This document shows, piece after piece, positions 8,144 to 11,758 of a DNA stretch of 64,000 nucleotides. The DNA is taken from positions 66,712,001 through 66,776,000 of the forward strand of contig NC_079169.1 of NCBI RefSeq assembly GCF_947568905.1, written 5' to 3'. A program made the position numbers and the translations under genes. Origin of the DNA: Ostrea edulis (lineage: Eukaryota). The notes under the pieces were generated by a model that saw nothing but the letters and a program-made list of their open reading frames with translations, had not been told where the DNA came from and made no database searches. Each line of letters opens with the position of its first letter. Within the stretch, counting starts at the first letter, position 1.

Positions 8144-8486
8144 ATGTCTTTCTTTGGGTTGACACAGTTGGGTTACCAAAATACAATCCGTGAGGGAATG
8201 GTCCAAGCCAAAATGGATCCTCTTCGTTCAAAAACTCAAATTGGATTTGTAGCCCTCCCCCCTTTAACAGAGAAAAATCCTCCCAGGCGGTCTATTGTAC
8301 CGATCAATCAGGTGTCAGGTTATGGACCTGGACCACAAGGCTCACACGTGGAACACACTAGGATGCGGGCAAAGCATATTCGTACTCCGAAAGGTTAGTT
8401 AACCTTTTGATTTTGTACTGTTGAATAGAAATTGGCCTCATACCGATATCAATTCTTCACAATTCTGAATGCTAGTACTTAGTGCA

Positions 8487-8533
<47 letters not shown>

Positions 8534-9718
8534 CAGTATATCCCTGGATCTTTGAAGCTCAAATATACTCCAAGCAATAATTGATCACAATGCAGTCTTA
8601 GTGAAATTTAGTCTTGGTGAAAATTTCAAACTCGTAACGAATTTGGATTGCTGCATCTCTATGCTGCACACATTATCATTAGATGAAATAATACATATGT
8701 TTAAAATATATAAATGGTGCTTAGATTAGGGGACTCGAACCGAGTATAGAAGTTTGTGGATTTATTGCTTCTTGTTTTTACAGAACCCTTTGAGATATAT
8801 AGGTTCCCTCTTCACACATCTAGACAAGTGGGATGGTGGACACACGAGGAACCATTAAAGAAGAGCCAACCCTGGACCCATGTTCCTCGTCATGTTCATG
8901 TCAACAGCGAAATGACCAGGTAATATCATATACGTCATCAAATATAGTTTTTAGTAATTAATCATAGGTTTGTGTACAATATGTTGAAAGTTTTGAATTA
9001 ACGACATGTGAAGCATATTGAATTGAAATTCAGGACTTTATCAAAGATGCGATTGGTTTCTGAAGAGTGAGATACATGTACTTGTTATACAACCATCGTC
9101 ATGAGCCACAGCTGAATTGTACGCTTCTCTGGGAAAGCTTGCAACTATGCCACATTGTGGGAGATTTCTCTTTATATTTATCTGAGACAAGTCTGTGTAA
9201 ATCAAATTCACAAGTAATATCTCTTACCAGGGTCTCAAATCAAATACCAGTCACCACTTGGGCATAGTAATGCATGTACTCTGCTTTTAAATACATTATT
9301 TTTAATTTGAAGGGCCTCCATGGCCGAGTGGTTAGAGCATCGCGCTCAAAATCTTGTCGACGCGGGTTCGAATCCCGCTCGCGCTGGTAAGTGAGAAAGT
9401 TTCCCGTTTACTTTCGGAAGGTTGGTGGTCTCTTTCCAGGTACATTGTATCTGGGTTCTCTCTTCCACCAATAAAAACTGGGCGCCACCAGATAACTGAA
9501 AAATTGTTGAGTGTGGCAGAAAACATCAATCAATCAATAAGTCATTTTTAATTTGACAATTGTACATAAAAATGAATAAGTGACATATATATCTGTATAG
9601 TAGATTTTCTAAGAAATAAGTTGTAAATGATTGTTGCAGATTTTAAGATATTTTTTCCATTTTTTTCAGATTTGTGAATGAAATGAGCCTAACTAATAGG
9701 GAGTTCACCTTGTTTTAA
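8144..9718 (+). CDS. TEX49: TEX49 / sperm microtubule inner protein 11-like, 144 aa
   Basis: Exons 8144-8393, 8784-8919, 9670-9718 join in phase (435 nt): MSFFGLTQLGYQN...EPFEIYRFPLHTSRQVGWW...PWTHVPRHVHVNSEMTRFVNEMSLTNREFTLF*. Both termini and the PW...PRH...S.MTRF motif match recalled TEX49/SPMIP11. Confidence 0.85.
8491..8530 (+). repeat. (TC)20 microsatellite
   Basis: Perfect dinucleotide run in TEX49 intron 1. Confidence 0.95.
9311..9543 (+). mobile_element. tRNA-derived SINE with TSD
   Basis: A box TGGCCGAGTGG (9321-9331), B box GGTTCGAATCC (9365-9375), (ATCA)n tail, and 13-bp TSD ATTTTTAATTTGA at 9298-9310 and 9544-9556. Confidence 0.88.
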
Positions 9719-11388
9719 TATTTCTGCCACAGTGATCATGACATGAACTATGTGGACACTGGATAAATGTCAAAAAGAGGGACTAAAACTGGGATATTTT
9801 AAGCAAATTTTATATCTATTTCTGTATACCTCAGTTATTGTTGGAGTACTGTAAATTTATTTAGCAAAATTCATTAGATGGAATGCGTGTTACGATAATG
9901 AAATTATACTATTGCATAATTGTTATTGTTTGAATTTGAAAGTAATTATGACATTAATGATTATATTACCTGTAATTAGAGATTTTTTTTTATATCTTAG
10001 CAGTACTTGGTATACCTACAGCATTATTCAGAATAATCTTTTTTAACATTAATAATTTGTACTATGTTTGTGTTGCATTCATTATAACTCGCATCAATGA
10101 AGGAAATACACTATACACCAGTCATTCTCAATATATGACCCCATTTGTGTCCGAATAAGAACTAAACAGTAAGACCTCATACTTTGACTACTGCTTTAGT
10201 ATTTAACAAACTTAATATCATAATTGTTAAGTTAATTGTTAATTAACAAAAAGAGAAAGTTTGAGTGATTAGTATCTCACAATCAGTTTAAAATTTAGTA
10301 AAACAGATAAATTTCCAAGCAAGTTCATATTGGCATTTGACACATTAACTGTTGTACATAGGATTTGATATTCTGTTCAATGTGTATAGATGTATGCTCT
10401 ACATTATGAAAATTTGCACCAATTCTTGGAATCATGGAATTGAGAGTGACTGAAATACTAATTTGGAAATTGTAATTCTGTTGTCTTATTCCATTAGTTT
10501 TATACATGACACTCCAAAGTCTGAAGTAGATTTTAATTTGGCTTTGTGCATTTTTTATTGTTTTGTTGTTGTTTTTGAGGTTGTTTTTTTTTTCGTTCAT
10601 CACATTTTCAAGGCGACATTAATGAAAATTTACTTTTTGAGTAGAATTTTATAATCCACCCAAAAAGAGATTTTTAAAAACTTTAGTAGTTTCATTTATG
10701 AGCTTAGAAATCACATTACATTATACTTTTTCATGATTTAATCTGAATCTAAATTTAATCTTGGTTTTCTTACTGAACAAAATCTACTTTACAAATTACT
10801 AGGCCCTAATAATTTTTAAAATTATCTTCATTATTGATCAGTCAGCAAATTCACACCTTAGGTTACTGTAGTTTTAATGTATATATGCCATTTGTAATGT
10901 ACGAGTTTTTGTCTGATGTGAATTAGGTTATAAAAATGTGCATTTTGCAGTTGAATTTTTGCACTTTCTAATATCATGATATCCTACAACTTTTTGTTGG
11001 TGTAACTTAACATTGCTTTTTTCTGTAAAGTCTACCGTTTTACTTCAAGAATCATGTGTTCACGTCAATTTTTGATAAATATTTGTTGTTTTTTCTCAAT
11101 AAATCAAAAAATCAAAACATCTCTGTACATGTTCAATTCTTGTCATTTGTTTACTGTGAGTGATCGGCATGTTGTTGAGCTGCAGATCTCTGGGGAAAAA
11201 TGGGATACATCTTACTCATTTTGTTCCCACCGCTACATGAACCAAAAATCATTTCGCCTTCAATTCTTTAGTACCAACCACCAATTGAGAATCTACAGAA
11301 ACATTCACAAATTTTGGAAGGTTCTGGCAATTTCTGTCATTATATTTTCTCATCAACCAATTTGTGACATTTTTGATTCTATTATTTC

Positions 11389-11758
11389 TGTAACAGGAAG
11401 GGAGAAAATGCAACGGACCAGACCAGGATTCGAACCCGGGCCCCCTGAATCTCTAGTCAGGTGCTCTACCAACTCAGCTAACTGGCCACTGGCAATCGAA
11501 CCCGGCTGACCGCTACATTCTTCCCTCCTTAAATGTCTTCACAACTGAAGACATCATCGACCCAGGATCTTTATCCCCTTGGCAGGCATTTTCACCTGTC
11601 ACTTCCAGGGGCTGGTCTACGGCACCAAATGTAACAGGAAGGGAGAAAATGTAACGGACCAGACCGGGATTCGAACCCGGGCCCCCTGAATCTCTAATCA
11701 GGTGCTCTACCAACTGAGCTAACTGGCCACTGGCGATCGAACCCGGCTGACCACTACA
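11389..11758 (-). mobile_element. Miniature LTR retrotransposon (TRIM) with tRNA-derived LTRs, Helenus-type
   Basis: Two 129-bp LTRs (11630-11758 and 11389-11517; TG...CA; 6 differences). PBS TGGTGCCGT starts 2 nt after the 5' LTR. PPT AAGGAGGGAAGAA abuts the 3' LTR. Internal region 112 bp, non-coding. 4-bp TSD TTTC (11385-11388, 11759-11762). Each LTR holds a tRNA cloverleaf with A and B boxes. Confidence 0.92.

Follow-up and report, generated by a model that had tools for sequence, protein, structure and literature searches.

Helenus elements are TRIMs (LTR retrotransposons in miniature) with tRNA-derived sequence in their LTRs; they were described in oysters in 2024, the lineage considered here being known from three other oysters, and Ostrea edulis, the flat oyster, is absent from Table 1 of that study (Kojima 2024, PMC10886601). 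Cassandra, a plant TRIM, has been reported to be transcribed from its own Pol III promoter (Kojima 2024, PMC10886601). The window analysed here, a stretch of 64,000 nucleotides of Ostrea edulis (NC_079169.1, positions 66,712,001 to 66,776,000), contains an element that resembles Cassandra in that a small-RNA gene module with a putative internal Pol III promoter sits in its LTRs and in forming tandem LTR-internal arrays, but Cassandra carries 5S rRNA rather than tRNA, resides in plants and has no known autonomous partner. The window element and LTR-11_DR with related Helenus elements of fish have a tRNA-His PBS and 4-bp TSDs in common, and both occur in thousands of copies and form tandem arrays, whereas the LTR sequence of the fish elements is unrelated, their internal region is only about 43 bp long and their tRNA-like part is less complete. 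To our knowledge, Helenus has so far been defined purely from sequence, with its Pol III transcription unvalidated, and in bivalves a similar PBS has been the sole earlier link to a helper.

The element, on the minus strand of window positions 11389-11758, is a complete 370-bp LTR element (129 + 112 + 129 bp) without any ORF. The original prediction had laid out a 5' LTR, 2 nt, a PBS, a PPT and a 3' LTR between two copies of a TTTC TSD, and each part was found where it had been placed (Table 1). Read on the minus strand, the flank ...GGAAA leads into the LTR (TGTAG...TTACA, with TG at its start and CA at its end), followed by TT, TGGTGCCGTAGACCAG..., about 75 nt, ...TTTAAGGAGGGAAGAA, the second LTR and the flank GAAATAAT...; the sequence directly after the TT is TGGTGCCGTAGACC..., and the PPT AAGGAGGGAAGAA precedes the second LTR. 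The TT before the PBS and the AA before the 3' LTR are the two bases that integrase removes from retrovirus-type ends. The predicted 95% identity of the LTRs was borne out by the repeat finder, which returned direct repeats at 11389-11519 and 11630-11760 (95% identical, 241 bp apart), and by comparison of the two 129-bp LTRs, which differ at 6 of 129 positions. Two hairpins are predicted in the internal region, for which a folding z-score of -3.0 and a few compensatory changes provide weak evidence (the MAFFT/alifold consensus was broken by gaps, and the hairpin extraction was unreliable); by eye, stems equivalent to hairpin 2, of other sequence, are present in the published consensus sequences. 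A 21-nt likeness (D5) of the 5' flank to the PPT region, considered as the trace of a decayed array with a false TSD, was rejected: with a local score of 24 (median of shuffled sequences, 23) and agreement in register at 7 of 24 positions, it is at the chance level, so the TSD of the window copy stands. Elsewhere in the window, contigs of 100% identity from two small RNA-seq runs cover positions 10900-11121, which probably represent an exon or a UTR some 270 bp away from the element, and several 21-bp tandem-repeat arrays (TCTGACAAGTCNACATAA-like) occupy 12337-13065 in both orientations.

Table 1 Features of the TRIM in the Ostrea edulis window, in the order of the element strand.
Feature	Window position	Strand	Evidence or remark
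5' TSD	11759..11762	-	GAAA on the element strand, TTTC on the plus strand
5' LTR, 129 bp, TGTAG...TTACA	11630..11758	-	same boundaries in dozens of copies
tRNA-like cloverleaf, 5' LTR	11656..11728	-	ARAGORN; Rfam RF00005, 54 bits
A box, 5' LTR (LTR positions 38-49)	11710-11721	-	within cloverleaf
B box, 5' LTR (LTR positions 82-92)	11667-11677	-	within cloverleaf
T4 run, 7 nt past the tRNA-like 3' end, in Pol III-terminator position	11646..11649	-	sequence; putative function
TT dinucleotide between U5 and PBS	11628..11629	-	sequence
PBS TGGTGCCGT[A]GACCAG	11612..11627	-	complements the 3' end (with CCA) of tRNA-His-GTG, one bulged A
Predicted internal hairpin 1, CCCCTGG...CAGG...CCTG..CCAAGGGG	11575..11611	-	folding; weak evidence
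Predicted internal hairpin 2, GATGTCTTCA-GTTG-TGAAGACATT, adjoining the PPT	11532..11555	-	folding
PPT AAGGAGGGAAGAA, with AA at its end before the 3' LTR	11518..11530	-	sequence
3' LTR, 129 bp	11389..11517	-	LTR comparison; 6 differences from 5' LTR
tRNA-like cloverleaf, 3' LTR, A box mutated to TAGCTGAGTTGG	11415..11487	-	ARAGORN; Rfam, 46 bits
3' TSD GAAA / TTTC	11385..11388	-	sequence

ARAGORN calls a 73-nt tRNA-like unit in each LTR, at exactly the coordinates of the predicted cloverleaves, with a 4-base 'anticodon' that amounts to an 8-nt loop; the scores of both units (Table 1) exceed the gathering score of 29 of the Rfam tRNA model. An Rfam scan of 10800-12400 (E<=1) returned the tRNA matches and one weak, sub-threshold mascRNA-menRNA match but no 5S rRNA, and the 5S rRNA-derived LTR sequence by which Cassandra and Ajax are recognized is absent from the window element. 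Both promoter boxes, A and B, have the canonical form and the usual spacing. An intact A box had been expected in each LTR; it is intact in the 5' LTR, but the 3' LTR has TAGCTGAGTTGG. Among 71 LTRs of the family, the box sequences TAGCTCAGTTGG and GGTTCGAATCC are each present in 55 and the T4 run is kept in 60; within the element, T4 occurs only here, once in each LTR at corresponding positions. At tRNA position 7 the family consensus is split between T and A, the latter of which would close the acceptor stem. The conservation profile of the 71 LTRs across the genome shows uniform decay apart from CpG sites, as expected for dead copies, and was discarded as an uninformative sign of function. 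Within the 30 nt that precede the tRNA-like unit, LTR positions 13-28 (window 11731-11746 and 11490-11505) contain a second T-arm-like motif, CCGGGTTCGATCGCC, also found in the Saccostrea and Crassostrea consensus sequences, which may be a remnant of a second tRNA-like half. The tRNA-like core is further the building unit of a tandem array with a 59-bp period at chr1 96,013,717-96,014,387, which includes at least 12 exact 22-mers of the anticodon arm.

The cloverleaf, its A and B boxes and the T run that follows it could also come from a pair of genuine tRNA genes or from a dimer of a tRNA-derived SINE mobilized by a LINE. Genuine tRNA genes have a 7-nt loop, a readable anticodon and a cellular isoacceptor, but the loop here is of 8 nt, the odd anticodon arm exists in about 1,000 exact copies, and a search for the source isotype found no genuine tRNA in the genome that shares both arms; the 29 genome matches in which the loop region is shorter are, without exception, copies of the TRIM with deletions. 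A SINE2 origin is contradicted by the TG..CA LTRs, the PBS, the PPT and the TSD fixed at 4 bp, and there is no A-rich or LINE-type tail. We therefore consider this pair of readings highly improbable, the anatomy of the element being what rules them out.

A search of the genome with the element yielded 3,256 first-look candidates, and the 53 full-length matches that were scored, with 89-100% identity, lie on nine of the ten chromosomes, pattern matches to the family being present on all ten. The 22-mer spanning the odd anticodon arm has 994 exact copies in the genome and the 22-mer across the LTR-PBS junction has 215; these exact-word counts suggest that the family comprises several hundred internal regions and roughly 2,000 LTRs, many of the latter being solo LTRs, an abundance similar to that of Helenus-2C_CGi of Crassostrea gigas (1,124 LTRs and 402 internal regions; Kojima 2024, PMC10886601). 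Nearly all of 30 loci examined are exactly LTR-internal-LTR with identical boundaries, and a few are LTR-(internal-LTR)n arrays of up to 7 LTRs with 237-bp spacing. Among 28 stand-alone two-LTR copies, some of which were picked solely because they contain an exact LTR-PBS junction, 17 carry a perfect 4-bp TSD, which would be expected by chance in 0.9% of copies, and another 8 agree at three of four positions; the TSD sequences differ from site to site, nearly all being distinct.

These data also bear on whether the window sequence is an immobile fragment of a 241-bp tandem satellite derived from a tRNA-like unit, a reading for which the LTR-internal arrays and the 59-bp-period array of the core on chromosome 1 might be cited. 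Most copies, however, are single LTR-internal-LTR units dispersed over all ten chromosomes with site-specific TSDs, two of the arrays, L010 and L022, are each flanked as a whole by a perfect TSD, and the PBS and PPT are conserved. The TSD statistics rule the satellite out, and of all readings considered we give it the least credence. The family is neither single-copy nor confined to satellite arrays, the two outcomes that would have spoken against the original prediction, and its call for a count of copies and TSDs was answered in favour of a mobile element.

The identity of LTR pairs in the sampled copies ranges from 79 to 98.4%, with a median of 96% and no identical pair, and the junction-selected sample includes many older, truncated or nested copies. 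From this divergence and the abundance of such copies, it follows that the family has a long history and that the sampled copies are not very young. The proposed check for an empty-site allele gave no support for polymorphism at the window locus: in one DNA run, which bridges both junctions, no empty-site joint was seen.

Homology to the published Helenus elements was assessed by motif look-up in DataS1.fa and comparison by eye, without a tool alignment, and by this measure the published oyster consensus sequences are clearly homologous to the window element. Helenus-1_SaGl of Saccostrea glomerata has the same 129-bp LTR and LTR layout, a 4-bp TSD, a tRNA-His-type PBS, a PPT (...TTTAAGGAGGGAGGAA) shared with the window element and a T4 run after the tRNA-like unit, and its LTR is about 90% identical by eye (13 of 129 differences to the 3' LTR of the window copy). 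It differs in an internal region of 103 bp versus 108-112 bp in Ostrea edulis, in three positions of the 8-nt anticodon loop, in a PBS without the bulged A (TGGTGCCGT-G-CC) and in an LTR start TGTGG versus TGTAG. Helenus-2C_CGi, with a 128-bp LTR and a 101-bp internal region, has the same layout, a His-type PBS (TGGTGCCGTGACC), also without the bulged A, two internal hairpins, a 4-bp TSD and, like Helenus-1_SaGl, a PPT ending ...TTTAAGGRGGGAGGAA; by eye, unlike the window element, it lacks a T4 run after the tRNA-like unit.

Given this homology, the TG..CA termini, the 4-bp TSDs, the PBS and PPT, the dispersal in many copies and the lack of coding capacity, the proposed assignment to TRIMs of the Helenus (TRIMp3) architecture holds, and the window element is very likely a complete Helenus-type TRIM of Ostrea edulis, the counterpart of Helenus-1_SaGl and Helenus-2C_CGi. 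As had been surmised, the family is probably undescribed in this species, which is missing from Table 1 of Kojima (2024, PMC10886601), the lineage itself being on record from three other oysters.

The genome contains ten identical tRNA-His-GTG genes and two single-base variants, ending ...AATCCTGGTCACGGCA; the 3' end reads ...CCTGGTCACGGCA, and its complement with CCA added is TGGTGCCGTGACCAGGAT. At least six of these genes, all but one identical, are clustered at chr1 101.09-101.33 Mb. The PBS TGGTGCCGT-A-GACCAG forms 15 pairs with this tRNA, 9 + 6 around one bulged A, so that the choice of tRNA-His in the original prediction stands, while the match is longer than the first 9 nt on which it had been based, and tRNA-Phe, named there as the alternative, is not needed. 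No tRNA in the genome has an acceptor stem that exactly fits the A-containing PBS. The bulged PBS is present in every regular copy of the young subfamily, and at 30 junctions the A is missing while the genomic 3' part of the PBS is retained. The perfect tRNA-His 17-mer TGGTGCCGTGACCAGGA occurs 77 times in the genome, and about half of the first 30 sites inspected directly follow the end of a TRIM LTR. The commonest length of the perfect tRNA-His run is exactly 18 nt, the length that reverse transcriptase copies from a primer tRNA before it meets the modified base at position 58. The run begins with the complement of CCA, which is not encoded in the tRNA genes, and was therefore copied from mature tRNA. 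The clearest case, L092 (chr9 41.71 Mb), lies within a perfect CATG TSD and consists of a 5' LTR, TT, an 18-nt tRNA-His copy, a stub resembling the U5 end, the bulged PBS, the internal region and a 3' LTR; it is one integrated cDNA that retains both the primer-derived and the template-derived PBS. Such cDNA copies of the mature tRNA-His 3' end within family members are direct evidence that tRNA-His primed this flat-oyster TRIM family.

Perfect tRNA-His cDNA copies after the end of a TRIM or Gypsy LTR and a spacer were also found at L038, L056, L059, L063, L042, L057 and chr5 15,461,203. The copies at these sites are 18 nt long, or 22, 27, 32 or 39 nt, and are followed by unrelated DNA or by the next LTR, not by an internal region. 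L057 has the structure LTR-TT-PBS18-AA-LTR, and the chr5 site consists of an LTR end, a 32-nt tRNA copy, a PPT and an LTR start; all of these sites resemble products of aberrant reverse transcription that extended into the primer. Another recurrent joint, in which the 18-nt tRNA-His copy is followed by A, AA or AAA and an inverted TRIM LTR end (TGTAACAGG...), was seen at chr5 91,690,753, chr6 84,263,183 and 84,301,155, chr3 96,947,836 and chr10 3,741,607. At L037 (chr1 3.536 Mb), a unit of an LTR and a 19-nt primer copy lies between directly duplicated stretches of about 15 bp (gactg..tattctttg) rather than within a 4-bp TSD, which hints at a different insertion route. In this genome, tRNA-His-GTG is the primer of several LTR retrotransposon families.

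The element encodes nothing and was integrated by an enzyme that duplicates 4 bp of the target; this integrase and the reverse transcriptase are presumably supplied in trans by a Ty3/Gypsy element. The search for a Gypsy sharing the PBS and the LTR termini, as the original prediction had proposed, turned up L070 (chr2 50.146-50.155 Mb; L070:1129-10000), a full-length member of a young Ty3/Gypsy family with 1243-bp LTRs that are 99.2% identical over the 1174 nt compared. It has two gag-like ORFs, an open frame of 1290 aa with protease, RT, RNase H, an integrase zinc domain, the integrase core and a C-terminal SH3-like domain, a tRNA-His PBS and a PPT downstream of pol; an additional 156-aa ORF between pol and the PPT (8284-8754) has no Pfam match. 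A scan of L070 for tRNA-like sequence found none.

The TRIM and L070 match only at four functional junctions, which are in colinear order. The LTR starts are identical (TGTAGTGGT in both, 9/9), the LTR ends agree at 11 of 12 positions (CTTCCTGTTACA in the TRIM, CTTCCGGTTACA in L070), the two PBSs specify the same primer, tRNA-His, with a bulged A in the TRIM and perfectly in L070, and the PPT with the adjoining LTR start agrees at 19 of 21 positions (TTTAAGGAGGGAAGAA in the TRIM and TTTAAGGGGGGAGGAA in L070, each followed by TGTAG). This pattern makes the TRIM look like a mimic of L070-type ends rather than a deletion derivative. Judging by these short terminal motifs, of 9, 12, 16 and 18 nt, we infer that the L070 family is the best helper candidate; it counts against this link that the sampled TRIM LTR pairs are older than the LTR pair of L070.

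Several other elements were considered as partners and set aside. L043, L049 and L068, old His-primed Ty3/Gypsy elements with a TTATT spacer like that of Gypsy-39_CGi, contain a zinc knuckle and real protease, RT and RNase H domains, but they are only 86-88% identical to each other, rearranged, degraded and without LTR pairs, and their LTR end CTGCTACA fits the TRIM less well. L069 is not autonomous: it is a 3.9-kb element with 1.2-kb LTRs and only a 184-aa C2H2-like ORF. This non-autonomous member of the Gypsy family of L070, with its C2H2-zinc-finger-like ORF (L069:877-4738), has an unrelated neighbour at L069:6364-9653 in which RT/RNase H is accompanied by a weak tyrosine-recombinase-like match (DIRS-like). 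L065, which appeared to have the same LTR end, is an internally deleted TRIM LTR. Two PPT candidates outside the TRIM family are located at chr1 22,434,845 and chr5 54,362,342.

Only about 30 nt of the LTR lie upstream of the tRNA-like unit, which, together with the canonical boxes, fits an internal Pol III promoter. RNA polymerase III, directed by the A and B boxes, would most likely initiate the genomic RNA, with a U3 of about 30 nt and an R-U5 of about 100 nt; the chance that Pol III drives the element RNA seems to lie between even and good. Because the T4 run in the 5' LTR precedes the PBS, Pol III would have to read through this weak stop. In the available RNA runs, which are tiny, no discrete Pol III transcript was found, the only contigs being the flank piece 10900-11121 and one that contains an LTR of another copy inside a longer transcript.

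Alternatively, the same TRIM could obtain its template from Pol II, through a start inside the LTR or read-through from a host gene, in which case the tRNA-like unit would be an RNA-processing or packaging signal, a chromatin boundary or a conserved passenger. The ~30 nt upstream of the unit leave little space for a Pol II promoter, the boxes are canonical and normally spaced, and the short total length of the element fits Pol III, although the T4 run stands in terminator position right after the unit and the sole RNA contig that touches an LTR continues into unrelated sequence. The related Cassandra is reported to be transcribed by Pol III (Kojima 2024, PMC10886601), whereas for the window element the use of Pol III is suggested by the boxes. 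A Pol II template would also accommodate the identity to the Crassostrea gigas consensus over 74 nt, which goes far beyond the A and B boxes, while the LTR flanks are about 27-30% different by eye; overall, we regard it as possible, if rather unlikely.

By eye, the 74-nt tRNA-like block of Helenus-2C_CGi, odd loop CTAGAGAT included, agrees at every position with the majority base in Ostrea edulis, whereas outside the core the 30 nt before it are about 30% and the 26 nt after it about 27% different, a divergence of about 28% for the remainder of the LTR. In agreement, raw reads from another oyster map only to 11406-11497 and 11636-11727, the tRNA-like core, and their overhangs resemble the LTR ends of Helenus-2C_CGi. 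An invariant core next to flanks that diverged between genera suggests that selection reaches beyond the A and B boxes. Mimicry of a tRNA could then have roles besides promoting transcription: the ends of the R region might, for instance, be defined by tRNA-processing enzymes, or the fold might aid RNA export or packaging into the particles of the helper Gypsy. We nevertheless consider it doubtful that the element RNA needs the cloverleaf in its entirety, over and above these two boxes.

The element is of a known kind, a flat-oyster member of the Helenus lineage described in 2024. The additions made here are a host-matched tRNA-His primer backed by fossil primer cDNA, a candidate helper with all four cis-acting junctions, and an invariant tRNA-like core set against fast-diverging LTR flanks. 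For Ostrea edulis, about 2,000 LTRs that score as tRNA genes will inflate the tRNA predictions in its annotations, and the same LTRs scatter potential Pol III promoters near the genes of a farmed species. If the cloverleaf does prove essential, the helper candidate and the tRNA-His footprints would provide a testable model for Pol III-type LTR parasites in an animal.
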